A stretch of DNA of 63,143 nucleotides, counting the filler, from Octopus bimaculoides (Eukaryota): NCBI RefSeq assembly GCF_001194135.2. It is 5 parts of 4 records of this genome, joined end to end, with 100 filler letters (N's around TTAATTAATTAA, not from the genome) between each part and the next. Parts side by side here need not be neighbours in the genome. Positions count along the whole stretch, not along the records: positions 24,886 to 56,358 come from NC_069010.1; 4 more parts are not named here. One strand, given 5' to 3'. The number at the start of each line of letters is the position of its first letter. Within the stretch, counting starts at the first letter, position 1. The position numbers and the translations under genes were made by a program. Below the pieces are notes generated by a model, which was not told the origin of the DNA, made no database searches, and was given only the letters and a program-made list of their open reading frames with translations. Shown piece after piece: positions 25,383 through 52,489 of this stretch.

Positions 25383-25541
25383 CCTATATAGCTTATCATC
25401 GCTCGTGGAGAAAAAGAATATCCTTGAAAAGGCTGATATTTCTTCGACTTTCAGATGTTTTGGTAAACTTTTTGGTAATGAAATAAAGGAAATTGTCTGT
25501 ATATCTTCTTGTTGTGAATCAGGGTGTGAGTGGTTATAGAG
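25383..25541 (-). CDS. aGPCR exon: GAIN subdomain B (LYNHSHPDSQQEDIQTISFISLPKSLPKHLKVEEISAFSRIFFFSTSDDKLYR)
   Basis: 159 bp, phase 0-0, tctctaacAG|...AGG|GTacgg; FISLPKSL and RIxFxxxxDDKLY match GAIN-B patterns. Confidence 0.9.
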
Positions 25542-25599
25542 CTGTTAGAGAAAAATGAAAGAAAAATTTGAAATTGATAAATAATAAATAAGAGAGCAG

Positions 25600-26505
25600 T
25601 TCATCTGAAGAGTTTGATAATGATATAAAAATGGGGGAAAAATGACGTATATGCTTAGATGCAACTGAGTCCCTACATTTGTTAATTCAAACGGAATTAA
25701 ATGACTTAGTGCTCGATTTGGAATTACCAAAAGAAAAGACAGAGTTGCTCGGCTCCAGACTTCAAGATCGGAATTTTCTCCAGCCAAACTCCAAAGTTCC
25801 CAATCGTCATCTGCAGTTTCATCATTTTACTTAGAGGAGGACAACATTTGTCTCTGCCACGATATCAGTGGTCTGATAGAAAAGATTGGCTTTCGCTATG
25901 ATCCAAAAGTATGTAGACTGTTCATTGACTCTAATAAAGCTTGCCTTAAAGCTGTATTACTGTACAACGGTGATGAAAATCTTTCAATACTTGTAGCACA
26001 TGTCACCGACCTTAATGAGACTTATGAATCAATGAAACTGCTGCAAAGGCTCATCGAATATAAAGGCCACATACGTAATATTTGTGGTGGCCCTAAAGTT
26101 GCATTATTAGTTCTTAGGTTATACTTGGGTTACACAAAGCGTGACTGCTTTTTGTGTCCCTGGAAGAACGGAGATAGCAAGAAATACTACAAAAAACGTG
26201 ATCTTCCAGTTCTAGATGAACTGAACATGTTGATAAACACAATGTGAAATACCCAGCACTTATTGACTCTCAGATAATACATCTTCCATCACTTCTCATT
26301 AAACTTGGCTCTTTGTTGAATTTCGCGAAGAGTATGGATGATCAATGTAGTGGTTTCCAATAATTAAAGGATAAATTTAAAGGAATTTTGACAGATACTA
26401 AACTTGAAGCTGGAGTTTTCACTTGACCTCTAATCTGCAGTGTCATCCTCGATTCACCGTTTCCATTTAATCTAAATGAGAATGAACTAGGAGCACTAAC
26501 CACTG
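25600..26505 (+). mobile_element. Degraded Chapaev-like (CMC superfamily) DNA transposase
   Basis: QTELNDLVLDLELPKEKTELLGSRLQ, RLFIDSNKACLKAVLLYNG, LGYTKRDCFLCPW, LPSLLIKLG and KLEAGVFT(*)PLICSVI across frameshifts; motifs recalled from Chapaev3-type transposases. Confidence 0.7.
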
Positions 26506-26873
26506 AGTCAAACTTCAGTACTACCAAATGGCATGAGAAAAGCATCCAGTACGCTCTGTAAAGTGGGTGTCGTAAGGAAGGGCAACATCCATCCACAGAA
26601 ATCATGCCAAAGCTGACTCTGTAGCACAGTACAGTCCTTGGAGAGACCGGATTCTGTCAAACCATTCAATTCATGCCAGCATGAAACGTGGACGTTAAAT
26701 AATGATGATGATGATGATGATGATGATGTAATATAGATGACACTCACACAAAACTTGTTATTATCTTTTTTTTTGTGCTGAAGCAAAAGATAAGAAAAAT
26801 AATGCCGTCAGTTGTATGGATATAAGTTCTAATTATTACGTTAGCATTATAGCTGATCTATTTAATCTGTGTG

Positions 26874-26914
<41 letters not shown>

Positions 26915-27061
26915 TTTTGTAAGATGTATCAGATAATGTATATACAATAACTACTTTATACGACAATAAATGAAATTATATTGCATTCTAATGTATTTCA
27001 TCAATTTGGGTGTTTAGAAAAAAACGGTTAACAAGAGAGTAATCATGTAAACGTATTGTAC

Positions 27062-27227
27062 CTGTGCTTCTGTTTCATTAGTTCCATAGAAAACACCATA
27101 GAAAAGACCATCGAAAGTGTCCTTATTCACTTTGGCAACACCAATACCAAGATTAGAATATATAGCTGTGACTTGCTGCTCTTCCAGTGGAATCTTTTCT
27201 GGGATCGTTTCTATAATGTCCAGTAAT
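27062..27227 (-). CDS. aGPCR exon: GAIN ((R)LLDIIETIPEKIPLEEQQVTAIYSNLGIGVAKVNKDTFDGLFYGVFYGTNETEAQ)
   Basis: 166 bp, phase 2-0, ttttctcacAG|...CAG|GTacaa; the last GAIN-A helix followed by beta strands (SNLGIGV, FxG). Confidence 0.9.
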
Positions 27228-27465
27228 CTGTGAGAAAATCAAGAAAATGACTTTCAATTAACAATGTGTTTCGAATACGTAATTAGCTGTAGGTGTAATT
27301 ACACTAATTATCTTAACTAACATGTCTTTGTATGCTACTGTTGCTTCTACTACCTCTGTTGTTGCTAGGTTAGCGTTGATGCAGAACATTTTATTATTTA
27401 TGCTGCTGCAAATATGGCTGCTGCTATTGCTTCTTTTCTTTCTTCCTTTCTCTCTTCGTCTTCAT

Positions 27466-27502
<37 letters not shown>

Positions 27503-27526
27503 AAGGAAAAGTGATTTGAATATTAC

Positions 27527-27758
27527 CTGCTGACACTTCTATCAGCTTGTTCTGCCTCAGCCAAAACCTTCTCTGGTGTGTTCATTATATTGTTGATACC
27601 AAGAAGTATATTGTCCAGTGTTATATTAGCCGACACGTTCGATATCAATGGCGCCATTTTCTCAAGAATATCTACAGCCAAGTCAATATCTTGTTGTTTG
27701 AAATACACTGACTTTTGCGAAACATTTAAGACCTCTTTCGAAATATCGCCGATATTAC
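27527..27758 (-). CDS. aGPCR exon: GAIN subdomain A helices ((G)NIGDISKEVLNVSQKSVYFKQQDIDLAVDILEKMAPLISNVSANITLDNILLGINNIMNTPEKVLAEAEQADRSVS-R)
   Basis: 232 bp, phase 1-2, catttaAG|...AG|GTaata; helical pattern resembling the GAIN-A region of ADGRG-type receptors. Confidence 0.9.
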
Positions 27759-28204
27759 CTTAAATGAAAATTTTACCATGAAATTTAATGGAATTACAGT
27801 CGCTTTGATTTGAAATATTAAATGCAAATTAAATGTCACATAACAAGTAACGAATCACCGGAAGTTAATTAAAAACTCCGACTTCAAAGACCAGAAAGAT
27901 TGCTGAATGTGTTCAGTTCATCAGTTCTGTACTCATCAAACAGCCTGAGGGTCTCCTGCTCTGTAACATTAACTGAAACAGCGGGGGAGTTACACAACAC
28001 TGTGGCGCCCTTTATAGGTTAGTAAGGCAGACACTTGATGGTAGTGGACGACGTGTGTTTGTACACAATATCATTGACAATCAATGAAAAGCGATACACC
28101 AACCGTCTTAAACAGCCATTAATTTCAACTCAATTATTTTTCTAATCCCAAGGTGAATCTAGACGAAAGCGGGTCGCCGTTCTAAGGAATAATATTGGTT
28201 TTCA

Positions 28205-28432
28205 AATACTTAGTTCAAATTTTGGTACTAGGCCAGCAATTCTGGGGGAGGATGTAAGTCAATTACATTGACCCCCACTGCTCAAATGGTATTTGTTTTA
28301 TCGACTCCGAAAGGATGAATGATAAAGTGAATCTCAGAGAAATTTGAACTCAGAAAGTGAGGACAGACGAAATGCCGCTAAGCACTTCCTTCGTCCGGCG
28401 TGCTAACAATTCTGCCACTTCACTTCCTTGAT
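28205..28432 (-). mobile_element. SINE family C; partial copies at 29485-29665 and 41324-41450
   Basis: Shared ttcaaattttggtac...gacccc...gaaaggat..aggcaaagtcgacctcg..gaatttgaactcag...gattctgccagctcgccgcctt. Confidence 0.7.
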
Positions 28433-29076
28433 CTAAAGATCAATATTGAAAAGATTCCATCAAGATTTCATAAAAAATTGATGTTATCAAATTACTGTAT
28501 GCTGATGAGAACATATTCAATTTTACTGTGCTATAATAATATCTGTGAGAGGTAAGTTGCTCACATTCTATGATAAACAGCTTTGTGGACAGCTTCATTG
28601 AAGATTTATAGCCAAACATAATGTATGCGGAGAAGTATGTACCAGTAATTATCTTTGTTGTTTTTTCTACTTCTCTATGTAGTCAGCCTATCGGCAGAAA
28701 GTTAGTGAGGAATTAGTTTCAACGATTATAAAAATAAACTCAACTCTCCTAATTAATAAATTTTGTCATAATGTTTCTATAAATGAATCAATTGATCTAC
28801 TGTTGGGCAAGATGAATACATTGCTGGAGAACTCAGAAGAGAGAATGCGGTGTATTACCTCTTGGTAGATAATATTAATTATAAATACACACACACACAC
28901 ACACACACACACACGAACACACACATACATACACACACATGCATACACACACATACACCCACACATACGTATAGTGGACGTAACGGAACAGACATACAAA
29001 GGCAAGTACATACATATATCTTCTCTCACAACTTCAACTACATTAAAAGTATTTCGAAGCACAGTTACTCGCTTAC

Positions 29077-29246
29077 CTTCATCAATGACTTGGCTTCTGA
29101 TGTTCTTTAGTCGTCGAGTGATCCACTCTGTATTGTAACATTCAGACATGTCTGGTTCTTGCCAGATACCAGTAAATGGTGAACACTTTAGTGATGTCTT
29201 AGTTTGGCTTGATAGCATTTCTAGATGCTTCACCGTTCTGGATGAA
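29077..29246 (-). CDS. aGPCR exon: HormR C-terminal half and linker (SSRTVKHLEMLSSQTKTSLKCSPFTGIWQEPDMSECYNTEWITRRLKNIRSQVIDE-G)
   Basis: 170 bp, phase 2-1, atttttccAG|...G|GTaagc; C...GxWxxPDxSxC motif of aGPCR HormR domains. Confidence 0.88.
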
Positions 29247-30288
29247 CTGGAAAAATGAATGTAAAACATTGTCAGACGTGTTTATTCATTCTCTTCTCAT
29301 CAATTTCAAAAGAATGAAGAGACCATCGATCTAGTTTGGATTTGAACTCATAAACTAGTAAAAGAAGGGTAAATAGCATAATGCGTTTTTGTGCGACATC
29401 TATTATTTACCCTGATCCCCTAACCTCAAAATGAATATAAAACGATCCTGCCAGTTGACCTCGCTTGTGTTTTGTATAATATTGGTTTCAATTTTTGGTA
29501 CAAGACCAACACTTTTGGAGGAGAGGGTAAGTCGATTGCACCAACCCCAGTCCTCAATTGGTGCAGAGTTTATCCATTACTAAGGATTAAAGGCAAAGTC
29601 GACCTCGACAGAATTTGATCTCAGAACGTAAAGACAGACGAAGTGCTGCTAAACATTTCCCTTTGTCTAATATTGACAACAAATCAAANNNNNNNNNNNN
29701 NNNNNNNNNNNNNNNNNNNNNNNNNNNNNNNNNNNNNNNNNNNNNNNNNNNNNNNNNNNNNNNNNNNNNNNNNNNNNNNNNNNNNNNNNNNNNNNNNNNN
29801 NNNNNNNNNNNNNNNNNNNNNNNNNNNNNNNNNNNNNNNNNNNNNNNNNNNNNNNNNNNNNNNNNNNNNNNNNNNNNNNNNNNNNNNNNNNNNNNNNNNN
29901 NNNNNNNNNNNNNNNNNNNNNNNNNNNNNNNNNNNNNNNNNNNNNNNNNNNNNNNNNNNNNNNNNNNNNNNNNNNNNNNNNNNNNNNNNNNNNNNNNNNN
30001 NNNNNNNNNNNNNNNNNNNNNNNNNNNNNNNNNNNNNNNNNNNNNNNNNNNNNNNNNNNNNNNNNNNNNNNNNNNNNNNNNNNNNNNNNNNNNNNNNNNN
30101 NNNNNNNNNNNNNNNNNNNNNNNNNNNNNNNNNNNNNNNNNNNNNNNNNNNNNNNNNNNNNNNNNNNNNNNNNNNNNNNNNNNNNNNNNNNNNNNNNNNN
30201 NNNNNNNNNNNNNNNNNNNNNNNNNNNNNNNNNNNNNNNNNNNNNNNNNNNNNNNNNNNNNNNNNNNNNNNNNNNNNNNNNNNNNNNN

Positions 30289-30600
30289 CTCCATTTCTTT
30301 TAGGGAAACGTTGTCATCTGCTGGTATTGATACATCAATTAGAAAGCATTTTTTTTTCTTCATGATCTTTGACAACTATATCTGGTCTATTGGCCTTAAT
30401 TTCTCTATCTGTGTGTATTGACATATCCCAGAGTATGGCTGCTTTCTCGTTTTCTGTGACCTTTTCTGGCGTGTGCCTATACCATCTTTTTTCTGTTGTT
30501 ATTCCATAGTGTTGGTATAGCTTCCAGTGTATATAAGTCCCAGCTCTGTCGTGTCTATGAATATATTCCTTCTTAGCCAGGACTGGGCAGCCAGAGATAA
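30289..30600 (-). mobile_element. R4/Dong-like non-LTR retrotransposon REL endonuclease fragment
   Basis: IISGCPVLAKKEYIHRHDRAG...ILWDMSIHTDREIKANRPDIVVKDHEEKKCFLIDVSIPADDNVSLKEME; runs into an N gap. Confidence 0.85.
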
Positions 30601-30623
30601 TATGATTTATTGTTTCTTGTCCA

Positions 30624-30663
<40 letters not shown>

Positions 30664-31252
30664 CGCTGTTGTAAATAAATAGTTTGAACTTGCTGGCTGA
30701 TTTGAGGACTATGGTTGATAAATTATTATCAGTAATATCTCAAGAGAGATATAGTCTTATGCTAACAGGAATCTGTGGGGGTGCCACATTTTGCTGGAAA
30801 TAAACTCTATATCTTTCAAGTCCTCTTGGCTACTAGGTATGACAGATTGTCGCAAATATTTCGAGAACCAGAGATCAGTTACAGTTCCATAAAACAAGAA
30901 CCGTAAGGAGGAGAAGGGGGGGGGAAGAGACTTAGAGACAAGAAGAGAGAAAACGTAAGGGGAGAGAGAAGAGTACAGGGTAGAGTTGCAACAGATTGCA
31001 GAGCGGATTCAGTAAAAAAACGCGAGATCAACAATAATAATTACAGAAAGAACAACAGTAGCAGCTTTGGTTGCTGCAACACTTCATCGAGGGAAACCTG
31101 AAGAAGGAAGATGGTAACAATTAGGACAACAACAACACAGAACACAACAGAGCTACCACTACCTCTGACAACAACACGAACAAGTAGTAGTAATAGTGAT
31201 TGTGTTAGCAAAATTATGATGGTAGTCGTGATAAAAATAAGAAAATTAATAC

Positions 31253-31414
31253 CTACTTCCATCAATTAATTCTACATTTTGTTGCTGAATTTTCAAGTCA
31301 TACAATGTCTGTGATGTGTTTAAAACTTGGTATATGTCGAGCAACAGCTTTTCCTTAGTAATATCTCTGACCACGTTACAGTATATAGTAAATATATTTT
31401 TACCATCCTCTGAA
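31253..31414 (-). CDS. aGPCR exon: SEA-like module part 3 (SEDGKNIFTIYCNVVRDITKEKLLLDIYQVLNTSQTLYDLKIQQQNVELIDGS-)
   Basis: 162 bp, phase 2-2, tatttcAG|...AG|GTatta (an alternative donor would end the exon at 31257). Strand-helix-strand pattern; its Cys could pair with the Cys in the previous exon. The SEA-like fold is an inference. Confidence 0.8.
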
Positions 31415-31729: not shown

Positions 31730-31749
<20 letters not shown>

Positions 31750-31760
<11 letters not shown>

Positions 31761-33101: not shown

Positions 33102-33157
33102 CCGCAATATTCAACGCTGAATGTTGTTCCCGTCAAGTTTGATAACTCGTACTCAAT
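33102..33157 (-). CDS. aGPCR exon: SEA-like module part 2 (IEYELSNLTGTTFSVEYC-G)
   Basis: 56 bp, phase 0-2, cttttgcAG|...GG|GTaagc; open frame and phase continuity. Confidence 0.8.
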
Positions 33158-34741: not shown

Positions 34742-34821
34742 AGATATTGACGTGTTTTCAGAGATTTTAGATTTGTTGAGCTTTTCGAAAATCATATAGA
34801 ATTCAAAGGAATTGGTCCAGC
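34742..34821 (-). CDS. aGPCR exon: SEA-like module part 1 ((G)WTNSFEFYMIFEKLNKSKISENTSIS)
   Basis: 80 bp, phase 1-0, ccttccatAG|...TCT|GTgagt; supplies exactly the phase needed between its neighbours. Confidence 0.8.
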
Positions 34822-35145: not shown

Positions 35146-35760
35146 CTACATATATGTTTCGATTCCTGCCCCTATGTGATACGTAATCCTATATGTGCTG
35201 TATATTTTCGAGATATATATTTGATAGTAGTTGACCAATCCTAAGAATGCTTCTAACAATTTGACGTTCATTGCGGGCGGCATATTCCGTATTGCCGTCG
35301 CTCTTGATGGGTCTGGCCTTCGTCCCATTTCGTCAACTACTTGACCCAGATATTTGATTTTTGTCACCAAAAATTCACATTTTTCTTCTATTAGTCTAAA
35401 CCCGTTTTCATTTATTTTACCAAATGCTTTCTTGATATGATCGAAGTGCTGCTCCACTGATTAGCTCTTTATCAAAATATCACCGAGATAAGCAATAAAG
35501 AAGTTGCAATCATGTAACATTGCATCCATCACTTATTGGAATATGGCAGGTATCACTTTTACTCCAAAAGGGAGCCGCTTGAAATTGATACAATCCACGG
35601 ATGTGTTGATTCTTAAAAGATTTGCACAATCATTCTCTACCTGTACGTGTAGGCAGTTCCCCAAGAGGGCTAATTCGAGAAAATTTTTCCTCCATTTAAT
35701 CTTGAGAACAAATTTTCTGGGTTTGGTAATGAATAATTGTGTTCCTACATAAAATGTCAA
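35146..35760 (-). mobile_element. Ty3/Gypsy LTR retrotransposon RT remnant
   Basis: FKRLPFGVKVIPAIFQ, AYLGDILI (degenerate YLDD), KCEFLVTKIKYLGQVVD, RPDPSRATAIRNMP, FLGLVNYY. Confidence 0.9.
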
Positions 35761-36780
35761 TTGTGTCCGTAAAATGTGTCAGAAGATTTTTTAAAGCAGT
35801 ATAGAGTTACTGTATTTTTCATGCTGTGTTGTCGCCAGTTTCTTCATAATTAGATACATTTTCATACTAGCCTTCTTGAATTTCGTTCTGGTTCAGAAAA
35901 ATACGTCAATGTCGAAACGTTTCATTAATATAGGCTCATGCGTGAATAACGGACCTAAATCGAACGATAGATCAATGCATATACACATAAATACGTACAT
36001 ACACATCTATATATATATATATATACAAGAATATATCCCTGTATATTTATAATGATAAATAGTTTTACCGATAAAGGTTTTTTTCATACTGAACTACTTG
36101 GCAAAATTGTTAATTATTAATTCTATTATTAATTGACGATTCTCTGCCCTTATTCTTGTATATTTTATATTTGATATCTCTAAGTTAGATGGCTAAACCG
36201 TAATCCCTTCCACACGGGACTTCTTTTCATACGGGACTATTTGTGACGCACATGGAATAGATTTCTTTGAGGTGAGGTGCCTGAACTCGCTNNNNNNNNN
36301 NNNNNNNNNNNNNNNNNNNNNNNNNNNNNNNNNNNNNNNNNNNNNNNNNNNNNNNNNNNNNNNNNNNNNNNNNNNNNNNNNNNNNNNNNNNNNNNNNNNN
36401 NNNNNNNNNNNNNNNNNNNNNNNNNNNNNNNNNNNNNNNNNNNNNNNNNNNNNNNNNNNNNNNNNNNNNNNNNNNNNNNNNNNNNNNNNNNNNNNNNNNN
36501 NNNNNNNNNNNNNNNNNNNNNNNNNNNNNNNNNNNNNNNNNNNNNNNNNNNNNNNNNNNNNNNNNNNNNNNNNNNNNNNNNNNNNNNNNNNNNNNNNNNN
36601 NNNNNNNNNNNNNNNNNNNNNNNNNNNNNNNNNNNNNNNNNNNNNNNNNNNNNNNNNNNNNNNNNNNNNNNNNNNNNNNNNNNNNNNNNNNNNNNNNNNN
36701 NNNNNNNNNNNNNNNNNNNNNNNNNNNNNNNNNNNNNNNNNNNNNNNNNNNNNNNNNNNNNNNNNNNNNNNNNNNNNNNN

Positions 36781-36974: not shown

Positions 36975-37384
36975 TCTTTTACTTTTTTACTTGTTTCAGT
37001 CATTTGACTGCGGCCATGCTGGAGCACCGCCTTTAGTCGAGCAAATCGACCCCGGGACTTATTCTTTGGAAGCCTAGTACTTATTCTATCGGTCTCTTTT
37101 GCCGAACCGCTTGGTGACGGGGACATAAACACACCAGCATCGGTTGTCAAGCAATGCTAGGGGGACAAACACAGACACACAAACACACACACATATACAT
37201 ATATATATATATATACATATATACGACGGGCTTCTTTCAGTTTCCGTCTTCCAAATCCCCTCACAAGGCTTTGGTCGGCCCGAGGCTATAGTAGAAGACA
37301 CTTGCCCAAGGTGCCACGCAGTGGGACTGAACCCGGAACCATGTGGTTGGTAAGCAAGCTACTTACCACACAGCCACTCCTGCG
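36975..37384 (-). mobile_element. tRNA-derived SINE family A with internal (AT/AC)n
   Basis: Head gcaggagtggctgtgtggtaagtagcttgct...ggttccgggttcagtccc; tail ggtgctccagcatggccgcagtcaaatgactgaaacaagtaaaa. Confidence 0.9.
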
Positions 37385-37855: not shown

Positions 37856-39095
37856 GNNNNNNNNNNNNNNNNNNNNNNNNNNNNNNNNNNNNNNNNNNNN
37901 NNNNNNNNNNNNNNNNNNNNNNNNNNNNNNNNNNNNNNNNNNNNNNNNNNNNNNNNNNNNNNNNNNNNNNNNNNNNNNNNNNNNNNNNNNNNNNNNNNNN
38001 NNNNNNNNNNNNNNNNNNNNNNNNNNNNNNNNNNNNNNNNNNNNNNNNNNNNNNNNNNNNNNNNNNNNNNNNNNNNNNNNNNNNNNNNNNNNNNNNNNNN
38101 NNNNNNNNNNNNNNNNNNNNNNNNNNNNNNNNNNNNNNNNNNNNNNNNNNNNNNNNNNNNNNNNNNNNNNNNNNNNNNNNNNNNNNNNNNNNNNNNNNNN
38201 NNNNNNNNNNNNNNNNNNNNNNNNNNNNNNNNNNNNNNNNNNNNNNNNNNNNNNNNNNNNNNNNNNNNNNNNNNNNNNNNNNNNNNNNNNNNNNNNNNNN
38301 NNNNNNNNNNNNNNNNNNNNNNNNNNNNNNNNNNNNNNNNNNNNNNNNNNNNNNNNNNNNNNNNNNNNNNNNNNNNNNNNNNNNNNNNNNNNNNNNNNNN
38401 NNNNNNNNNNNNNNNNNNNNNNNNNNNNNNNNNNNNNNNNNNNNNNNNNNNNNNNNNNNNNNNNNNNNNNNNNNNNNNNNNNNNNNNNNNNNNNNNNNNN
38501 NNNNNNNNNNNNNNNNNNNNNNNNNNNNNNNNNNNNNNNNNNNNNNNNNNNNNNNNNNNNNNNNNNNNNNNNNNNNNNNNNNNNNNNNNNNNNNNNNNNT
38601 CCATTTCTTGTTTTATAGTGCATAGTTGTACCATTCTAAACTTTTATTCTTTACAAACAAGACACAACGCTTCAAGCGAACTACAATACTCTCCTAAAAC
38701 AATAGGAAATAACATGTGTACAGTGTATTTCGTAGCGGTGCCAAATGGCACCTTGAAATAATTCAACAAATCAAATCAAACATCACTGCAATAGATCGTA
38801 CGGACTATTTTCATTTCTTCGTATCTCTAACGAAGTATTTAGATATTATTCTAATAAAATACAAGATATTTTGACCATATTCCTGAATGAGCAAAGAAAT
38901 AGTAACTCACCAGTTTAGATAAGTCATCTCTGCAGGGGATGTTTTTCGCACAGGTTCTAAACTTTTGCACCATAAATTGAGGCAAGAATCATTCCTAACA
39001 TCTTTAATACATGTTTCATGGAAATTAATGTTATAAAGTTTTATTTTTATACCCAGTTTTTGCGATGCCGTATGGCACCACTAGGATCAAATAGC

Positions 39096-39785: not shown

Positions 39786-40183
39786 TTGTTGTTGTTGTTG
39801 TTGACACTCCGTAGCTTACGATGTCGAGGGTTCCAGTTGATCCGATCAACGGAACAGCCTGCTCGTGAAATTAACGTGCAAGTGGCTGAGCACTCCACAG
39901 ACACGTGTACTCTTAACGTAGTTCTCGGGGAGATTCAGCGTGACACAGAGTGTGACAAGGCTGACCCTTTGAATTACAGGCACAACAGAAACAGGAAGTA
40001 AGAGTGAGAGACAGTTGTGGTGGAAGAGTAAAGCAGGGTTCGCCACCATCCCCTGCCGGAGCCTCGTGGAGCTCTTAGGGGTTTTCGATCAATAAACACT
40101 CACAACGCCCGGTCTGGGAATCGAAACCGCGATCCTATGACCGCGAGTCCGCTGCCCTAACCACTGGGCCATTGCGCCTCCAC
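39786..40183 (-). mobile_element. tRNA-derived SINE family B, full length
   Basis: Head gtggaggcgcaatggcccagtggttagggcagcggactcgc...ggtttcgattccc (pol III A/B boxes); (CAA)n tail. Confidence 0.9.
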
Positions 40184-40245
40184 TATTAACTTATTAATGT
40201 GTAATAAATCAAATGTAGTTATATTAGATAATAAATAGCACTTAC

Positions 40246-40429
40246 CGATGAAATCATTCTTGTTACATAAGTTTCCGACGCAACAACCAGCACAGGAAGT
40301 GCCATCGGTCCATATATTGCATGTTTGGCTATTGTTTCTCATAAGGTCAAGACATTTTCTGTATGTACTGCAGGATCTTTCAAACTTCAGTGTAATACCG
40401 CTCATTGATACAGTCAACCGACAAGCAGG
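40246..40429 (-). CDS. aGPCR exon: LU/three-finger module, second part (PACRLTVSMSGITLKFERSCSTYRKCLDLMRNNSQTCNIWTDGTSCAGCCVGNLCNKNDFI-G)
   Basis: 184 bp, phase 0-1, ttttcttacAG|...G|GTaagt; ends in the LU hallmark CCxxxxCN. Confidence 0.9.
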
Positions 40430-40760: not shown

Positions 40761-41014
40761 GTTGGCACTCCGTCGCTTACGACGTCGAGGGTTCCAGTTG
40801 ATCCGATCAACGGAACAGCCTGCTTGTGAAATTAACATGCAAGTGGCTGAGCACTCCACAGACACGTGTACCCTTAACATAGTTCTCGGGGATATTCAGC
40901 GTGACACAGTGTGACAAGGCTGACCCTTTGAATTACAGGCACCACAGAAACAGGAAGTAAGAGTGAGAGAAAGTTGTGGTGAAAGAGTACAGCAGGGTTC
41001 GCCACCACCATCCC
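40761..41014 (-). mobile_element. SINE family B, 3' part (head in gap)
   Basis: Near-identical to 39803-40050. Confidence 0.9.
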
Positions 41015-41679
41015 CNNNNNNNNNNNNNNNNNNNNNNNNNNNNNNNNNNNNNNNNNNNNNNNNNNNNNNNNNNNNNNNNNNNNNNNNNNNNNNNNNNNNN
41101 NNNNNNNNNNNNNNNNNNNNNNNNNNNNNNNNNNNNNNNNNNNNNNNNNNNNNNNNNNNNNNNNNNNNNNNNNNNNNNNNNNNNNNNNNNNNNNNNNNNN
41201 NNNNNNNNNNNNNNNNNNNNNNNNNNNNNNNNNNNNNNNNNNNNNNNNNNNNNNNNNNNNNNNNNNNNNNNNNNNNNNNNNNNNNNNNNNNNNNNNNNNN
41301 NNNNNNNNNNNNNNNNNNNNNNNNCAGTGTTTTTTCTGGTACTTAATTTATCGAACTCAAAAGGATAAAAGGCAAAGATGACCTCGGCAGTATTTTAACT
41401 CACAGGCATTTCGTTCAGCGTTCTACCGATTCTGCCAGCTCGCCGCCTTAAGTTCGTCAGGTAATCCCAATAAAACAGAAAGTTTCATTCAATCCAAGTT
41501 TCTTCTCAATCGGAGAATGCACAAGGGGATTTTCTTTTCGCACACAATTTACGAAGAAAATAAAGCGTGCAAAACTCATCAGGAACGAAAACTAATACAC
41601 CCGCACTGAAAGATGATAATGAAATAAAACTGTCAGACTGAACTCTTCAAGGATAGCAAATTAAACAGAAAATGCATAC

Positions 41680-41771
41680 CTCTGCTCCTGGACAGCTTGT
41701 CACTTCTGAACCATTGCACTTCATCCCTGAACATGTTTGACACTGTAAATTCCTTTGAAATAACGAGTAAT
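41680..41771 (-). CDS. aGPCR exon: LU/three-finger module, first part (YSLFQRNLQCQTCSGMKCNGSEVTSCPGAE)
   Basis: 92 bp, phase 1-0, ttctctAG|...GAG|GTatgc; LxCxxC start typical of LU domains; joins in frame to the 40246-40429 exon. Confidence 0.85.
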
Positions 41772-42106: not shown

Positions 42107-42451
42107 GTGGAGGCGTAATGGCCCAGTGGTTAGGGCAGCGAGCTCACGGTCGTAGGATTGCAGTTTCGACTCCCAGACCGGGCGTTGTGAGTGTATCTTG
42201 AGCGAAAACTCCTAAAGCTCCACGAGGTTCCGGGAGGGAGTGGTAGCGAACCCTGCTGTACTCTTTCACCACAACTTTCTCTCACTCTTTCTTCCTGCTT
42301 CTGTTGTACCAGCCTTGTCACACTCTGTGGCACTCTGAATTTCCCCGAGAACTAAGTTATTTGTTCACGTACCTGTAGAGTGCTCAGTTATCTTCACGAG
42401 TAGGTTGATCGGATCAACTGGAACCCTCGACGTCGTAACCGACGGAGTTCC
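42107..42451 (+). mobile_element. SINE family B, diverged copy with internal deletions
   Basis: Same tRNA-like head and ggatcaactggaaccctcgacgtcgtaa tail. Confidence 0.88.
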
Positions 42452-44099: not shown

Positions 44100-44480
44100 T
44101 CATTATTCTTGTGAGAGTCCTGAAGATAGAGTCCTGAAGTACCTCCTGCATAGGGTCCTATCAGAAGCAATTGTCAACACACTTTCTGGTTGGTTTCTCG
44201 AACGTGACCGACTGCAACTATGGATATTATCTCGTCATCTGGTTTGGAGAGACGCCATCATCTCGGAAGTACGAATCCTGTCGAGTAACGTAACTCTAGA
44301 GATTATTCGGAGGAAACTCGTTTCGGCTTCTGTTATTTGTGATCCTAATCTTTCGGTCGTTAGCCATCTTTCATGTCCATAGGTGAGGGTAGGCATGAAA
44401 ACTGAACTGAAGATAGCGTGTAAGCTTTTTTACAAAGCTGTCCTCTTCTGAGGATCGAATGCTAGAGCATTTGTTGTCTC
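44100..44480 (-). mobile_element. RTE-clade LINE C-terminal remnant
   Basis: SVFMPTLTYGHERWLTTERLGSQITEAETSFLRIISRVTLLDRIRTSE. Confidence 0.7.
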
Positions 44481-44861: not shown

Positions 44862-45735
44862 NNNNNNNNNNNNNNNNNNNNNNNNNNNNNNNNNNNNNNN
44901 NNNNNNNNNNNNNNNNNNNNNNNNNNNNNNNNNNNNNNNNNNNNNNNNNNNNNNNNNNNNNNNNNNNNNNNNNNNNNNNNNNNNNNNNNNNNNNNNNNNN
45001 NNNNNNNNNNNNNNNNNNNNNNNNNNNNNNNNNNNNNNNNNNNNNNNNNNNNNNNNNNNNNNNNNNNNNNNNNNNNNNNNNNNNNNNNNNNNNNNNNNNN
45101 NNNNNNNNNNNNNNNNNNNNNNNNNNNNNNNNNNNNNNNNNNNNNNNNNNNNNNNNNNNNNNNNNNNNNNNNNNNNNNNNNNNNNNNNNNNNNNNNNNNN
45201 NNNNNNNNNNNNNNNNNNNNNNNNNNNNNNNNNNNNNNNNNNNNNNNNNNNNNNNNNNNNNNNNNNNNNNNNNNNNNNNNNNNNNNNNNNNNNNNNNNNN
45301 NNNNNNNNNNNNNNNNNNNNNNNNNNNNNNNNNNNNNNNNNNNNNNNNNNNNNNNNNNNNNNNNNNNNNNNNNNNNNNNNNNNNNNNNNNNNNNNNNNNN
45401 NNNNNNNNNNNNNNNNNNNNNNNNNNNNNNNNNNNNNNNNNNNNNNNNNNNNNNNNNNNNNNNNNNNNNNNNNNNNNNNNNNNNNNNNNNNNNNNNNNNN
45501 NNNNNNNNNNNNNNNNNNNNNNNNNNNNNNNNNNNNNNNNNNNNNNNNNNNNNNNNNNNNNNNNNNNNNNNNNNNNNNNNNNNNNNNNNNNNNNNNNNNN
45601 NNNNNNNNNNNNNNNNNNNNNNNNNNNNNNNNNNNNNNNNNNNNNNNNNNNNNNNNNNNNNNNNNNNNNNNNNNNNNNNNNNNNNNNNNNNNNNNNNNNN
45701 NNNNATTTAATATTAATTTACCTTCTACAAATGGA

Positions 45736-46124
45736 GTGGAGGCGCAATGGCCCAGTGGTTAGGGCAGCGGACTCGCAGATCTTAGGATCGCGGTTTCGAT
45801 TCCCAGACCGGGCGCTGTGAGTGTTTATTGAGCGAAAACACCTAAAAAGCTCCACTAGGCTCTCGGCAGGGGATGGTGGCGAACCCTGCTATACTCTTCC
45901 ACCACAACTTTCTCTCAGTCTTACTTCCTGTTTTTGTTGTGCCTGTAATTCAAAGGGTCAGCCTTGTCACACATTGTGTCACGCTGAATATCCCCGAGAA
46001 CTACGTTAAGGGTACACGTGTCTGTGGAGTGCTCAGCCACTTGCACATTAATTTCACGAGCAGCAGGCTGTTCCGTTGATCGGATCGACTGGAACCCTCG
46101 ACGTCGTAAGCGACGGAGTGCCAA
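45736..46124 (+). mobile_element. SINE family B, full length
   Basis: Same head, body and tail. Confidence 0.9.
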
Positions 46125-46229
46125 TGACAGGGCAAGATAATATGTTCTCATTCTTTCTTCATTTATGAAGAGAGTGGGCAGGTGTCAGTGGTAAAATAGA
46201 AGCTTCAGTACAAGTTGGGACGGATAGGC

Positions 46230-46400: not shown

Positions 46401-46641
46401 AAAGGTAACCAACACCTTACAATCTATAAGAAGGGAAGGGATTAATCCTTTGGAATTTAAATGAGCCACATAAGGCCCAAATATTCTATCTGTTTTATGT
46501 TGATCTACACCATATCCGGATCTACACGATTGAAATCTTGAAGCTATGAGATAATGCATGATTAATTCAAAACAAGGCCAGATCCGGTCTCTCACACCTA
46601 CCCTACAATGTCATTCTAAAAATAAACAATCACGTCATTGA

Positions 46642-46723
46642 AATCTCCCTGAGAACTACGTTAGGCGTCAACTGGATCAACTGGAACCCTCGACGTCGTA
46701 AGCGACGGAAGTGCCAACAACAA
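46642..46723 (+). mobile_element. SINE family B, 3' fragment
   Basis: gagaactacgtta...ggatcaactggaaccctcgacgtcgtaagcgacggaagtgccaacaacaa. Confidence 0.8.
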
Positions 46724-46826
46724 NNNNNNNNNNAATAAGAAAAAGTAAATAAATCTGTTTTCTCTTATTCAGTACTGTCTAAAGTGCTCTTTGCTCAACA
46801 GAAACTGAACAAATGCTCATGGTTAC

Positions 46827-46930
46827 AGTACAATTGTTTGTTTCTTTGTATTGTTCTTATGGTAGCGTTGTCTGGACAGAAATAGGTTCCTTCAATCTGA
46901 CTCAGATTTCCTAAGCTAAGAGAAAATCTT
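46827..46930 (-). CDS. Possible exon bridging the LRRs to the LU module (RFSLSLGNLSQIEGTYFCPDNATIRTIQRNKQLY)
   Basis: Long pyrimidine tract plus cacAG acceptor, and its phase 2 to 1 fits the missing link. The donor T|gtaacc is weak and there is no clear LRRCT NPxxCxC motif. Confidence 0.25.
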
Positions 46931-47563
46931 CTGTGAAATCCCAACAACAAAAGATGGAAGATGATAAAATATAAAAATGACAAAACATTAACGAGACTCT
47001 GTTATGTTCACATCATGTGGTTTATATAACATTCTCATCTATAATTAAATATTATGGTCGATATAGGTACAGGCATGGCACGGTAGAAAGAAGATTGCTT
47101 GTCACAGACATTGATTCTTTAGTCCCATTTTGTGCCACTTTGGGTAATTGACGTCTACTATAACCTATAATTAGTCTAGTGAGTAAATTCGCTACCGGAA
47201 ACTGTGAGGAGGCCTGTCGTAAGTATACCTTTGTGATTATCCCAGAACACGCTTGACAACAGATCTTCGGTTGTTTACGTCCCCGCAAATTAGCGGTTGG
47301 CCAAAAATATTCTGATTGGTTTTATAACAGATTTTAAAATGTTAAGTATTGGGGACGATTTGATCAACTAAACCCTTGAACGCAGCACACCAGCATGGCC
47401 GCAGTCCAATGATTGGAACAAAGAATTATAAAAGTATACACTCCAATGGTAATGTAATGTTATAAGAACTCTTCAAAGAAAATAAAACGTGAATTATTAC
47501 CACACTGACTGTCTTCAGAACAGTTCACAACTTTAAGAATCCTATTCAGAGAGTATATAACAA

Positions 47564-47877
47564 TACTCTTTTACTCTTTTACTTGCTTCAGTCATTTGAC
47601 TGCGGCCATGCTGGAGCACCGCCTTTGTAATCGAGAAATTCGACCCCTGGACTTATTCTTTGTAAGCCTAGTACTTATTCTATCGGTCTCTTTTTGCCGA
47701 ACCGCTAATATATACGACGGGCTTCTTTCAGTTTCCGTCTACCAAATCCACTCACAAGGCTTTGGTCGGCCCGAGGCTATAGTAGAAGACACTCGCCCAA
47801 GGTGCCACGCAATGGGACTGAACCCGGACCATGTGGTTGGTAAGCAAGCTACTTACCACATAGCCACTCCTGCGCCT
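47564..47877 (-). mobile_element. SINE family A lacking the central microsatellite block
   Basis: Head and tail match the other copies. Confidence 0.88.
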
Positions 47878-48821
47878 ATGTTCATCTTTAACCGTTAGTA
47901 GNNNNNNNNNNNNNNNNNNNNNNNNNNNNNNNNNNNNNNNNNNNNNNNNNNNNNNNNNNNNNNNNNNNNNNNNNNNNNNNNNNNNNNNNNNNNNNNNNNN
48001 NNNNNNNNNNNNNNNNNNNNNNNNNNNNNNNNNNNNNNNNNNNNNNNNNNNNNNNNNNNNNNNNNNNNNNNNNNNNNNNNNNNNNNNNNNNNNNNNNNNN
48101 NNNNNNNNNNNNNNNNNNNNNNNNNNNNNNNNNNNNNNNNNNNNNNNNNNNNNNNNNNNNNNNNNNNNNNNNNNNNNNNNNNNNNNNNNNNNNNNNNNNN
48201 NNNNNNNNNNNNNNNNNNNNNNNNNNNNNNNNNNNNNNNNNNNNNNNNNNNNNNNNNNNNNNNNNNNNNNNNNNNNNNNNNNNNNNNNNNNNNNNNNNNN
48301 NNNNNNNNNNNNNNNNNNNNNNNNNNNNNNNNNNNNNNNNNNNNNNNNNNNNNNNNNNNNNNNNNNNNNNNNNNNNNNNNNNNNNNNNNNNNNNNNNNNN
48401 NNNNNNNNNNNNNNNNNNNNNNNNNNNNNNNNNNNNNNNNNNNNNNNNNNNNNNNNNNNNNNNNNNNNNNNNNNNNNNNNNNNNNNNNNNNNNNNNNNNN
48501 NNNNNNNNNNNNNNNNNNNNNNNNNNNNNNNNNNNNNNNNNNNNNNNNNNNNNNNNNNNNNNNNNNNNNNNNNNNNNNNNNNNNNNNNNNNNNNNNNNNN
48601 NNNNNNNNNNNNNNNNNNNNNNNNNNNNNNNNNNNNNNNNNNNNNNNNNNNNNNNNNNNNNNNNNNNNNNNNNNNNNNNNNNNNNNNNNNNNNNNNNNNN
48701 NNNNNNNNNNNNNNNNNNNNNNNNNNNNNNNNNNNNNNNNNNNNNNNNNNNNNNNNNNNNNNNNNNNNNNNNNNNNNNNNNNNNNNNNNNNNNNNNNNNN
48801 NNNNNNNNNNNNNNNNNNNNN

Positions 48822-49124
48822 AGTGGCTGAGCACTCCACAGACACGTGTACCCTTAACGTAGTTCTCGGGGATATTCAGCGTGACACAGTGTGACAAGGC
48901 TGACCCTTTGAATTACAGGCACAACAGAAACAGGAAGTAAGAGTGAGAGAAAGTTGTGGTGGAAGAGTACAGCAGGGTTCGCCACCATCCCCTGCCGGAG
49001 CCTCGTGGAGCTTTAGGTATTTTCGCTCAATAAAAACACTCACAACGACCGGTCTGGGAATCGAAACCGCGATCCTATGACTGCGAGTCCGCTGCCCTAA
49101 CCACTGGGCCATTGCGCCTCCACA
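48822..49124 (-). mobile_element. SINE family B (tail in gap)
   Basis: Head at 49124, body matches the other copies. Confidence 0.9.
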
Positions 49125-49424
49125 CCTAATTTGAATACGCCGTCTGGAATGTTACCAGCAGAAGGTAAGGGAGACTGATTCTAAAAGGGGGAGATGTTGT
49201 TGAATGATCCCTCCCCCCAAGTAACAAAATTGTACTGTCATTGTTATAAAACAAAGAACTGCCGTGGCGTCAGGAGTTCGTGTTGGTAGCAGTTCACTGT
49301 GTGCCGTTGATATAGAGCGTTGAGTCTCGTGTAATAGAAATAGTAGTGCATCGTGTCTATACTTTCTTTCCCCTTGCTTTGTGATATTATATATCCAATA
49401 CAAAGATATAAAAGTATAGAAGAA

Positions 49425-49790
49425 GAAGGAGGAGGAGGAGGAGGAGGACAAGAAGAAATCGAGAAGGAAGAAGAAATAGGAGGAGGAGGACAAGAATAAA
49501 TAGAGAAGGAAGAAGAAATAGGAGGAGGAGGACAAGAAGAAATAGAGAAGGAAGAAGAAATAGGAGGAGGAGGAGGAGAGGGGAAATACAAAAAGAGGAA
49601 GAGGAAGAAAAAGTACGAGAAAAGAAGACGAAGAAGAGAAGAACAACAACAACAAAAAGAAGAAGGGAAGAAGAAGGAGAAGAAGAAGAAGAAGAAGAAG
49701 AAGAAGAAGAAGAAGAAGAAGAAGAAGAAGAAGAAGAAGAAGAAGAAGAAGAAGAAGAAGAATGAAAGCAAGAAAAAGAAAAAAAGAAAT
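49425..49790. repeat. Purine-rich field: three 42-bp units (gaggaggaggacaagaagaaatagagaaggaagaagaaatag) followed by (GAA)n
   Basis: Direct reading. Confidence 0.85.
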
Positions 49791-49899
49791 TATATATATT
49801 TTAAGAGGGGGAATGAGAGAAATCGGCAAATAAGGTAATATTAAACATTCATAAGTATATTGTGAGTGAAAGATTATGAAGTAAATTGAGGCAACTTAC

Positions 49900-49971
49900 A
49901 ATATTTCTAAATTTTTGAGAGTTGCAAACCATCCGCTTTTAATGTCCGTAATGGAATTATGGTAAAGATTT
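49900..49971 (-). CDS. aGPCR exon: LRR 2 ((L)NLYHNSITDIKSGWFATLKNLEI-L)
   Basis: Exactly 72 bp, phase 2-2, catgcAG|...|GTaagt; LRR consensus. Confidence 0.9.
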
Positions 49972-50117
49972 CTGCATGATATAAAAAAAAGGACATTTTT
50001 TTATGAAGAAGAAGAAGAAAGATTATTATGTTTTAAGAGGGAGAATGAGAGAAATTGGTAAATGATTTGAGAATCATATCGTGAGTGAAAGAATAAAAGA
50101 AAAATGAGACGACTTAC

Positions 50118-50189
50118 AGTGTTCGTAAATTGTAGAGATATGCAAACGATCCGGGTTGAATGTGCGTAAAATAATTCCAGGAAAGTGCT
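50118..50189 (-). CDS. aGPCR exon: LRR 1 ((L)ALSWNYFTHIQPGSFAYLYNLRT-L)
   Basis: Exactly 72 bp, phase 2-2, aatgcAG|...|GTaagt; matches the 24-residue typical LRR consensus. Confidence 0.9.
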
Positions 50190-50859
50190 CTGCATTATTA
50201 AAAGGGACAAGTTTAGAAATAATAGAAAGAATAGATTCGTAATTCAATATTCAATATTGTGTCATAATAGTGAGAGTAATATGGAGAACAATTAGGACGA
50301 TGAAGAAGAAAGGAACATGAAGATGGTGGTGATGATGGTGATCATGATGACGATGATGGTGATGATTATGGTGATACTCATGAGGTTGATGAACATGATG
50401 TTTTTCTCTTTATTTTTTCTGTGAAGACAGTGGAGATACCCCTCCAGGTTAAACCAGAGGAGGTGGAAAAGTTCCCAGATCCTATTCTCCTAACCGATGG
50501 CGGAGTGGATTGGTGTTGTGGTTGAGGGCAGAAAGCAAAGATGCTACATGCGCTGTACTGAAGGCCACATCACAGTTTCTGTCCATAACAAAAATCGGAA
50601 GAAAGAAGATTCCCATCACTACTCGCACCGCGGTCCCAGGTGCAGCAGCAGCAGTAGTAGCTAGAACGTGTATCAGTAGCATCAGCAGCGATGAATAGAG
50701 GAATAATAGCAGTAGCACCAGCACTAACAACAATAACAACAGCAAGATCAGCAAAAGCGTCATCAATATCCTCAATGCAACCAAAACCCGCCACCCAGGA
50801 AAATATTCAACTCCGTCTCTTTTACTCTCACTCTCTCCCCTCCATTTTCAAATGCACAC

Positions 50860-51370
50860 ACGGATACGCGGAAAACACCTTTTTCACCCTTTTTGATATA
50901 CCCCGCTGACCTTGACTCTCATTGACTATAGGCCTGAATCAGAGAATTGCGCCCCAAGTGATCCAAAATGTTGGTGCAGGCAGAAGGAATGGCCTCACAG
51001 CACAGGGCTACGTTGACCAGATCCTAAGACCTCACATCGTGCCCTTCTTTGCCCGTCACCATAACTCCGTATTCCAGCAGAACAATGCTCTCTCTCCCAC
51101 ACGTCTAGGAACTTCCTGCGTTCGCAGAACATCAGAACCATGCCGTGGCCGGCTCTCAACCCGTATTTGAACCCAATTGAATACCTGTGAGATGAAACCA
51201 AGAGACGGCTGAACCAGGTGGTTCCAAGGCCGACAACTCTTGTGGAACTGGAAGGAGTTCTCCTCAGGGTGTGGGCACAGGTACGAATAACTTTTGTGAA
51301 CCGCCTCGTGCACTCCATGTACCGACAGTGTATTGCCGTTTTGAACGCCCAGGGAATGCAGACAATATTG
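50860..51370 (+). mobile_element. Tc1-like transposase remnant
   Basis: LTAQGYVDQILRPHIVPFF...VFQQNNA, MPWPALNPYLNPIEYL, RPTTLVELEGVLLRVWAQV...RLVHSMYRQCIAVLNAQG. Confidence 0.85.
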
Positions 51371-52020
51371 AACATGTTACGCCTTACAATCTCGATATGC
51401 TGGATCCGCCCACTACCACGACACATGACAACGACCTATAGACTGGTCAAAGCGCATCCAAGAAATTGACTTTATCAGATTTATCAAAATTTATCTCTGA
51501 CATAATGGAATCAAAACATATCTCACAATCACATAGGTCACGCGTTTCTTTTGCGGTTCAGTGTAAATAATAAATTCAGTATAGGTATACGTTGAATGAG
51601 AAACAATTTATTTGACTTCACAGTAAGTAATTTAGTAGAAAGTGGGTTATACATCTTTAGATTGTATACCTGACTTTCTACTATAAAATTGAAGAAATTG
51701 ACGGAACGCTGAACTCCAGACTAAACAACTTCCGAGTATAAGACCGAAAGATGTAGAGACAGCTTTAAACACACGTCCTTGCTCAATCGCTGGCCAGCGA
51801 GAAAGAGAATGAATTGAGCGGGAAACGCTTGCTTTATTAATTCTACGCATGCGTAAGACTACGCATGCGCAGGCGTTACTACAGTAACATATCGGTCTGT
51901 TTTACTTTAACATTGGGTTTAAAGCTGATATCAACAACATAAGCGATTATCTAAGAACATAATCGATGAGAATTTAAAACATTGGATGTGGAAAATATGT
52001 AGAAAGTATCAAATACTTAC

Positions 52021-52220
52021 AAAGATGTAGTAGTTTGCGAGATATTGTTGGGGACTGAAGTTAATAGACGGCGTTCACAATTTACAATTCCATTCTGATA
52101 GCAAATACATATGGTGCATGCACCTGGCACAACTTGTTGCCCGAAAACCAATCTCGTATACAGTATGAACACAAAAGTCCATTGAACTAACATAATTTGA
52201 CGGAACATATTTTCAGGCAT
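52021..52220 (-). CDS. aGPCR exon: start, signal peptide and LRR N-terminal cap (MPENMFRQIMLVQWTFVFILYTRLVFG/QQVVPGACTICICYQNGIVNCERRLLTSVPNNISQTTTS-L)
   Basis: Hydrophobic stretch ending VFG-QQ; 4-Cys LRRNT pattern; acceptor ttctgttacAG just upstream (exon starts 52224); donor TT|gtaagt, phase 2. The start codon could be any of three ATGs (52220, 52208, 52193). Confidence 0.85.
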
Positions 52221-52489
52221 AAATCTGTAACAGAAGAAAATAGAAATTATCAGAGGCTTCAATGTTATTACTTTCATGCTGCAGATTCTTCGAAGGAATT
52301 AAAGTTCACCCCTGTTCCATGTGACGAATATGGTTTTATTTTCATAATTTGATATTTAAAGTTACAAAATTAAGTTTCGAGAAATGTTTGTGAACAACTT
52401 TATTTGAGATTATAGCTTTAATGGGTGATAATTTCAAATAAAACTGGACATCAAACACACACTCACACACAGACACTCACAAACACATT

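Follow-up and report, generated by a model that had tools for sequence, protein, structure and literature searches.

The window analysed here is a 63,143-nucleotide stretch of Octopus bimaculoides DNA joined from several parts of the genome, and its subject is a receptor locus on the minus strand of the piece at positions 24886-56358. The locus is probably a single adhesion G protein-coupled receptor (GPCR) gene of a mollusc-wide family, whose product would carry, from the N-terminus, a signal peptide, LRRNT, leucine-rich repeats (LRRs), LRRCT, one LU (three-finger) domain, a non-cleaving SEA-like module, HormR, GAIN/GPS and a seven-transmembrane (7TM) region. The receptor family is real and its LU domain has been overlooked, and the window gene is an ordinary member of an expansion that has already been published. 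The piece matched chromosome record CM046630.1 (GCA_001194135.2) in reverse orientation at about 2.99-3.03 Mb, with 100% identity and the same N gaps. It had a G+C content of 38%, was rich in microsatellites and interspersed repeats, and ended at a 2196-N gap, past which the gene continued.

The architecture was found complete in full-length relatives. An LU+SEA profile run exhaustively, by hidden Markov model (HMM) search, against 1.84 billion representative proteins returned 45 proteins, among them full-length receptors in which LRR, LRRCT, LU, SEA-like, HormR, GAIN and 7TM were collinear. These came from O. bimaculoides itself (P0061, P0093 and P0105, the last with a Death domain), from other cephalopods (O. 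vulgaris, Argonauta hians), from gastropods (Haliotis, Nucella, Bulinus, Physella) and from bivalves (Dreissena, Ylistrum, Mizuhopecten), and they aligned end to end with 30-37% identity. One mRNA spans the receptor from signal peptide to 7TM, because the 3468-nt open reading frame (ORF) of P0065 was uninterrupted on an intronless transcript contig, a 4201-nt Logan contig from run SRR21372857. Outside the molluscs, only a small ascidian Ly6-like protein was matched by the profile search. An alignment search for homologues gave 13 matches, and a homologue search with the LRR block alone produced no candidate. Judged by these sequence comparisons, the architecture is at least mollusc-wide and not an octopus invention, and the LU domain of this receptor family predates the cephalopods. 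The original prediction for this locus, made from the DNA alone, had proposed a lineage-specific receptor type, a proposal that does not survive the finding of the same collinear order in other cephalopods, gastropods and bivalves.

The number of modules varied within the octopus family (P0001, P0033, P0017, P0053, P0105; L005 36243-36395). An O. sinensis model had three tandem LU domains, SEA-like modules were duplicated in several octopus models, and a second copy of an LU exon was present in a neighbouring O. bimaculoides locus. One paralogue (P0105) had a C-terminal Death domain, and O. vulgaris P0011 was without SEA and HormR.

Exon blocks and domain modules

Exons were mapped with two RefSeq products that matched the window at 100% and with homologous paralogues, and then with family-specific HMMs. 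Twelve exons were located on the minus strand, all with canonical AG/GT boundaries and polypyrimidine tracts, and every domain element named in the original prediction was present among them. Exon 1 (52021-52208) supplied the start codon (MFRQ...), the signal peptide, an LRRNT with the cysteine pattern C-x2-C-x-C-x7-C and the beginning of the first LRR, and its donor left 2 nt of a codon. The start of this exon was homologous to the starts of paralogues P0005/P0011; ATGs farther upstream, at 52277 and 52220, were used by the RefSeq/UniProt models. Two LRR exons of 72 nt each followed, exon a at 50118-50189 (LALSWNYFTHIQPGSFAYLYNLRT; LRR-unit HMM E 4e-3), which was included in RefSeq P0113/P0114, and exon b at 49900-49971 (LNLYHNSITDIKSGWFATLKNLEI; LRR-unit HMM E 2e-8), which left 2 nt of a codon.

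The LU domain was encoded by two exons. LU exon 1 (41680-41771; …YSLFQRNLQCQTCSGMKCNGSEVTSCPGAE) was internal, with the acceptor ctctag|AT, and needed 1 nt from an upstream exon. Its acceptor and phase were the same in O. vulgaris locus L003 and in L005, part of a neighbouring paralogous O. bimaculoides locus, and together with its intron it was 86% identical to L005. LU exon 2 (40246-40429; PACRL…CAGCCVGNLCNKNDFIG) ended in CCVGNLCN and completed a 12-cysteine three-finger domain. Three exons made up the SEA-like module: 34742-34821, with beta1 and the start of alpha1, 33102-33157, and 31257-31414, which was homologous to L002 9844-10064 and left 1 nt of a codon at its donor (A|gtaggt). HormR exon B with its linker (29077-29246; (C)SSRTVKHLEM…KCSPFTGIWQEPDMSEC…IDEG) encoded the second half of HormR and, at its acceptor ttccag|T, needed 2 nt from the upstream exon. 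The GAIN exons were at 27527-27758 (helical subdomain A; Pfam GAIN E 2e-3, with the label PF26588 on the RefSeq product), 27062-27227 and 25383-25541, the last exon inside the piece; those that followed lay beyond it at L001 29480-29611 and 30397-30549 (GPS, CSCDHL|TSFALLM). There were 12 N-x-S/T sequons in 541 amino acids, compared with 6.6 expected from composition, and all ten sequon types that had been listed were found.

The twelve exons formed three in-frame blocks (LRR; LU-SEA; HormR-GAIN) that could not be joined directly because the phases clashed at the LRR/LU and SEA/HormR boundaries. The LRR block left 2 nt of a codon and LU exon 1 needed 1 nt, while the SEA block left 1 nt and HormR exon B needed 2 nt, and the direct SEA-HormR join gave a stop codon. 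The single phase-consistent exon chain described in the original prediction was not confirmed in this assembly.

The LRR block was readily recognized, with Pfam LRR_8 scoring 49.1 bits (cut-off 27; E 4.9e-13) on a model comprising exon 1 and both LRR exons. The window's LU+SEA segment, scanned directly against Pfam, gave no match at E<=1, so family profiles were needed. When an LU profile built from 25 family sequences was run against all PDB chain sequences, the 12 matches were all three-finger proteins, namely LYPD1/Lynx2 (8.9e-6), LYPD6 (8.6e-5), candoxin, LYPD6B, SLURP1, toxins, activin receptor and CD59. The 12 LU cysteines were invariant or nearly so among the 25 sequences, and all of them, including the C-terminal CC-x4-CN, aligned with those of LYPD1. 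Scanned one by one, the same members matched Pfam Toxin_TOLIP (10/25), Activin_recp (8/25) or UPAR_LY6_2 (5/25), with a best E of 1.4e-5.

Structure prediction gave a similar picture. A first AlphaFold run on a shallow alignment of 13 close paralogues left the LU part with a predicted local distance difference test (pLDDT) score <50. The AlphaFold2 model of the LU domain based on the alignment of 25 diverse sequences had a pLDDT of 80.5 and a predicted template modelling score (pTM) of 0.71. The top 50 of 50 Foldseek matches of this model in the PDB were three-finger folds, with Lynx2 the best at a template modelling (TM) score of 0.63/0.67, and the Foldseek E-values were weak, 0.03 or worse. 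By profile and predicted fold, the Cys-rich module is an LU/three-finger domain, which agrees with the call made from the DNA; the per-module checks that had been suggested for it, with profiles and with AlphaFold/Foldseek, both returned the three-finger fold.

The beta/alpha module that follows is probably a divergent, non-cleaving SEA domain, as its profile matches and predicted structure indicate. Residues 95-190 of the AlphaFold2 model had pLDDT values of 75-92 and the order beta-alpha-beta-beta-alpha-beta. Pfam SEA was matched in 4 of 15 diverse family members (best E 1.1e-6) and not in the window copy; the Haliotis protein P0076 reached 23.7 bits (cut-off 26.4; E 5.5e-5). The best PDB match of the SEA-like family profile was the ADGRF1 SEA fragment 8hc0_B (E 0.004), and Foldseek returned only generic ferredoxin-like folds for this module, none at E<=1e-3. 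A G|SVVV-type autoproteolysis motif, which is present in only some SEA domains, was absent from the beta2-beta3 turn, which reads EYCGSEDGKN. The Pfam, ADGRF1 and element-order results together support the SEA-like assignment of the original prediction.

HormR and GAIN lay downstream of the SEA-like module as anticipated, in the form of the HormR-B exon followed by the three GAIN exons. In the paralogues, Pfam HRM gave E 0.003-0.013, below the cut-off, and the HormR family profile matched only PTH1R, PTH2R and the ADGRG6 HormR in the PDB (E 0.5-0.7). Six residues, C4, W18, C31, C40, W68 and C76, were invariant in the family. On the RefSeq product P0117, the first four exons of which are in the window, Pfam GAIN was sub-threshold (E 2.6e-3), GPS had an E of 7e-12 with the HL|T-type cleavage site CSCDHL|TSFALLM, and 7tm_2, outside the piece, had an E of 1e-34 over profile positions 4-250 of 250. 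An intact GPS (…CSCDHL|TSFALLMDV…) and a complete 7TM region were thus encoded just downstream of the piece. The run of the GAIN exons into a product with GPS and 7tm_2 bears out the identification of the locus as an adhesion GPCR ectodomain.

Assembly gaps, joining exons and gene models

Three of the gaps within the piece, 41016-41324, 36292-36780 and 37857-38599, were intronic, and the reading frame was correct across all of them, the LU domain being complete and the RefSeq product translating exactly. Three others, 29689-30288, 44862-45704 and 46724-46733, coincided with the positions of missing exons predicted from paralogue intron homology. In the paralogues, LRRCT and the first part of HormR each have an exon of their own, in precisely the phases required, the LRRCT exon having 1+3n+1 bases in O. 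vulgaris L003 and the first HormR exon 115 nt in O. bimaculoides L002.

The expected positions were obtained by aligning intron DNA of the paralogous locus L005+L002 (CM046630.1, 0.75-0.85 Mb) to the window. Window 47038-46735 was 77% identical to the L005 intron just upstream of the last LRR exon (…YEDGAFLFLPS… in the paralogues), and this homology ended at the edge of the 10-N gap 46724-46733, where the exon would be expected to lie; a repeat element came next. L005 25459-26292, which begins 221 bp past its LRRCT exon, matched window 44835-44245, starting from the edge of the gap 44862-45704. An LRRCT exon of about 155 nt, beginning with 1 nt and ending with 1 nt of a codon, would accordingly be placed at about 45056-45214 within that gap. 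The L002 sequences on both sides of the first HormR exon matched window 30722-30624 and 29658-29441, which would put HormR exon A (115 nt in the paralogue; …VCDESTT…FYWP.TKIGT…PC…ATRYC) at about 29870-29985, in the gap 29689-30288. We infer from this synteny that the last LRR, LRRCT and HormR-A exons all reside in unread sequence.

Several points weigh against a single intact gene. No HormR-A, LRRCT or last LRR exon was present in the readable window sequence: a search for further LRR and first HormR exons in all frames of that sequence gave only LRR exon a, an LRRCT HMM found no match in it, and HormR-A was not in the readable stretches 31256-30289 or 29688-29247. Since the joining exons are unreadable, the continuity of the blocks depends on synteny with the paralogue. 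Interspersed repeats, which could alone explain the gaps, border them, as does a LINE-like fragment at 30739-30338. The matches on which HormR depends are sub-threshold, weak but consistent. Exon 1, at the N-terminus, was about 30-38% identical to the paralogues, as against about 70% for LU and 60-78% for GAIN. No transcript of the window gene was seen, the current RefSeq annotation divides the locus into three same-strand models, and ligand binding, cleavage and signalling are attributed to the window receptor by analogy.

Some of these points would also be expected if the locus belonged to a tandem cluster as a paralogue that is decaying or truncated, with LRRCT and HormR-A truly lost, for example via repeat or LINE insertions. 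Such a locus would make no full-length receptor and at best a truncated GAIN-7TM product, accompanied by non-functional upstream exons. The absence of the joining exons from all readable sequence and the unusual divergence of exon 1 fit this explanation, as do the LINE-like fragment lying roughly where a continuation of the sequence upstream of HormR-A would be expected, the repeat that comes after the 10-N gap at the expected last LRR exon, and a RefSeq isoform without TM2-4 (P0004, compared with P0117). Fast-expanding tandem families often contain pseudogenes, and with repeat copies and the LINE-like fragment beside the gaps a true loss of exons is possible. However, 12/12 readable exons had open frames and canonical splice sites, the cysteines of LU (12/12) and LRRNT were retained, as were the Cys/Trp residues of HormR-B, the GPS and full 7TM were intact downstream, and each expected exon position fell in a gap and not in readable non-homologous sequence. 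Decay is therefore regarded as unlikely, and a single gene with exons hidden in gaps as the preferred interpretation.

The three current RefSeq models are P0113 (160 aa, 'slit homolog 2-like'), P0032 (211 aa, LU + SEA) and P0117/P0004 ('ADGRG6'). Taken at face value, they would be three real transcription units, one for a small secreted protein with LRRs, one for a protein with LU and SEA, and one for an adhesion GPCR whose N-terminus is short. LRR-LU is likewise all that is present in many of the octopus paralogue models (for example, P0001 and P0041), and soluble LRR-LU products could arise through alternative termination. Nevertheless, neither P0032 nor P0117 had a signal peptide. P0032 started in intron read-through upstream of the conserved internal acceptor of LU exon 1, and the ADGRG6 models (P0117) began at an internal Met, 29218, mid-HormR in its second half. 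At their 3' ends P0113 and P0032 consisted of coding sequence only, without an untranslated region (UTR), and stopped at the first in-frame stop; the terminal exon of P0032 (31097-31084) was likewise coding sequence only and finished at the stop codon. LU exon 1 and HormR exon B were internal exons whose acceptor sequence and phase matched those of the paralogues, and the full-length relatives and one mRNA hold all of the parts in one chain. Because of the missing signal peptides and the read-through or mid-domain starts of P0032 and P0117, and the UTR-less ends of P0113 and P0032, the models are best taken as fragments of one gene, and would derive from one transcript; independent transcription units are quite improbable.

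The gene is thus fragmented in the annotation, as had been suspected originally. The neighbouring paralogous locus L005+L002 was split in the same manner, with P0088 (LRR-LRRCT-LU) directly upstream of P0027 (SEA end-HormR-GAIN), and the O. bimaculoides gene counts for the LRR-LU receptor family are probably distorted by assembly gaps. An older RefSeq release, P0114, had LRR, LU and SEA in one model by way of a 41-nt exon at 47541-47501.

Two candidate bridges between the LRR and LU blocks were rejected. The 41-nt exon 47541-47501 (ILKVVNCSEDSQC) was phase-compatible with an LRR-LU join and had no protein or DNA homology to LRRCT exons; it adjoined a repeat, and current RefSeq reads through to a stop, so it was regarded as a prediction artefact. 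The ORF 46930-46827 (…LSLGNLSQIEGTYF…NKQLY), a phase-compatible LRR/LRRCT bridge, gave an LRRCT HMM E of 10 and was 77% identical to paralogue intron.

An interspersed repeat of ~300-390 bp was present in at least five copies in both orientations (39790-40185, 40765-41015, 42107-42448, 45705-46124 and 48822-49124), several of which adjoined assembly gaps, and its copies in O. vulgaris L003 were 78-98% identical. The sequences suggest a young SINE-like element common to octopus species, and it is a likely cause of the assembly gaps. A second repeat family, at 47563-47879, stopped ~20 bp upstream of the 41-nt exon and had two copies in O. vulgaris locus L003 with 88-95% identity; the translated ORFs 37089-37358 and 54957-55356 looked, by eye, like this repeat. 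Retroelement ORF fragments were present in introns at 35149-35460 (-), with a weak Pfam RVT_1 match (E 0.002), at 30338-30739 (-), which resembled a LINE reverse transcriptase at its C-terminal end and ran into the gap 29689-30288, and at 44238-44429 (-), which was reverse transcriptase-like by eye only. In intron 1, two adjacent ORFs at 50922-51469 (+) resembled by eye the C-terminal part of a Tc1/mariner transposase and had no Pfam match. The intron directly downstream of LRR exon b contained a very long low-complexity tract, 49155-49895 (-), that was pyrimidine-rich, (CTT)n/(TC)n, and read poly-L/poly-S/poly-F. Finally, the 5' flank of exon 1 (52599-52691, -) resembled, with 55% similarity in a read-through frame and an E of 3.5e-4, the read-through at the N-terminus of P0001, an O. 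sinensis 'slit-like' LRR-LU model, and this similarity suggests that promoter and 5' UTR sequence was duplicated together with the gene family.

Possible mechanism and significance

The mechanism proposed for the receptor was derived from established adhesion GPCR biology. The LRR and LU domains would sit at the end of a glycosylated stalk and there bind a partner, whether in cis, in the matrix or on a different cell, and the GAIN domain would cleave itself at HL|T. Displacement of the N-terminal fragment by force or ligand would then bare the tethered agonist TSFALLM, which would activate the 7TM region and, through it, a G protein. The family has expanded in tandem in octopods.

The original prediction had also linked the LU fold to the nicotinic-type chemotactile receptors of cephalopods. 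No evidence for this link was found; the LU domain predates the cephalopods, and the link is not needed to explain it, although it would be compatible with the nearest free relatives of the domain, Lynx2 and LYPD6. A more specific proposal, that the LU domain, acting as Lynx2/LYPD1 and LYPD6 do, docks on a Cys-loop (nicotinic-type) receptor or on an LRP-type co-receptor, either of the same cell or of one next to it, and that the octopod tandem expansion in suckers, skin and axial nerve cord couples contact or chemotactile sensing to G-protein signalling, must be considered highly speculative and very improbable. If it were true, LU docking would join one receptor to another in a way that no adhesion GPCR is known to do.

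The content of the ectodomain is largely what adhesion GPCRs are classified and studied by. From bivalves to octopus, this family keeps the LU domain in one set place, with the LRR array on one side and an ADGRG6-like SEA-HormR-GAIN stalk on the other. Such receptors form a mollusc-wide type that the automated names 'ADGRG6-like', 'slit-like' and 'uncharacterized' have hidden. The type offers a concrete ectodomain for ligand tests in a family for which expansion and positive selection in octopus arms have already been pointed out. Furthermore, gap-rich assemblies split such genes, with the result that gene-model counts are inflated and architectures masked.

Comparison with known receptors

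The octopus members have been described before. Ritschard et al. 2019 reported an octopus-specific, co-localised and positively selected adhesion GPCR expansion, 'group 3', with LRRs in 5/22 members and one Death domain, and with the group expressed in axial nerve cord, suckers and skin of O. bimaculoides (PMC6408891). Two group 3 members, A0A0L8GYR2 and A0A0L8FLR8, fell in the 90% clusters of P0061 and P0060, and the window family is the group 3 family of that study. The window gene itself did not appear among the published members when looked up as A0A0L8I5U9, the one UniProt id of this gene that was searched. The octopus expansion of the family, LRRs included, was thus already in print. Group 3 was treated there as octopus-specific, whereas the architecture is mollusc-wide here. 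The supplementary InterProScan table of PMC6408891 contains an unlabelled SUPERFAMILY match, SSF57302 (snake-toxin-like), at residues 136-215 of A0A0L8GYR2 (E 5.7e-6). The match is not discussed in the text of PMC6408891, which mentions neither an LU nor a SEA domain. A literature search turned up no description of an adhesion GPCR with an LU or Ly6 domain, in agreement with the earlier statement that no characterised adhesion GPCR is known to have an LU domain.

Among free-standing LU proteins, LYPD1/Lynx2, LYPD6 and LYPD6B were the best profile and fold matches (6zss, E 9e-6, TM 0.63/0.67; 6gbi, E 9e-5, TM 0.59), with about 20% identity to the octopus LU module. They are small single-domain proteins, glycosylphosphatidylinositol-anchored or secreted, whereas the octopus LU is an internal module between LRRCT and SEA. 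The SEA domains of ADGRF1 and ADGRG6 likewise have the order beta-alpha-beta-beta-alpha-beta and stand directly N-terminal to HormR/GAIN; unlike this comparison set, the octopus SEA-like module has no G|SVVV-type motif (EYCG-SEDG).

ADGRA2 and ADGRA3 (GPR124/GPR125), the vertebrate receptors with which the locus had been compared in the original prediction, likewise have an LRRNT-LRR-LRRCT tip followed by HormR, GAIN and 7TM, and one octopus paralogue was named ADGRA3 by NCBI. A precomputed Pfam label, PF26588, also calls the GAIN domain 'ADGRA2/3-type'. In ADGRA2/3, LRRCT and HormR are separated by an Ig domain. No Ig-family match was found in the window product or in the full-length relatives, in which the LU and SEA-like modules occupy that position, and membership of ADGRA2/3 was rejected for lack of an Ig domain. 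The list of the 60 best matches to solved structures contained no ADGRA chains. An LGR-type receptor was rejected as well, the 7TM region being of the secretin/adhesion type.

The parallel with ADGRA2/3 was replaced by one with ADGRG6/G2, to which the GAIN/7TM sequence and the SEA-HormR-GAIN order were closest. Among solved structures, a full-length octopus family member matched ADGRG2 (2e-68), ADGRG6 (2e-65) and the ADGRG6 ectodomain 6V55 (4e-22). ADGRG6/G2, and not ADGRA2/3, would therefore be the nearest vertebrate relative by best-match ranking and module order, the PF26588 label differing on this point, and most members of the family are named 'ADGRG6-like' by NCBI. ADGRG6 (GPR126) and ADGRG2/G4/G6 have the same membrane-proximal order of SEA, HormR, GAIN/GPS and 7TM, and the tethered-agonist motif of the ADGRG group is likewise of the T-x-F-A/G-x-L-M type. 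A Pfam scan gave no CUB or pentraxin (PTX) match in any family member scanned. Thus, where ADGRG6 carries its distal CUB and pentraxin domains, the mollusc family has LRRNT-LRR-LRRCT and LU instead.

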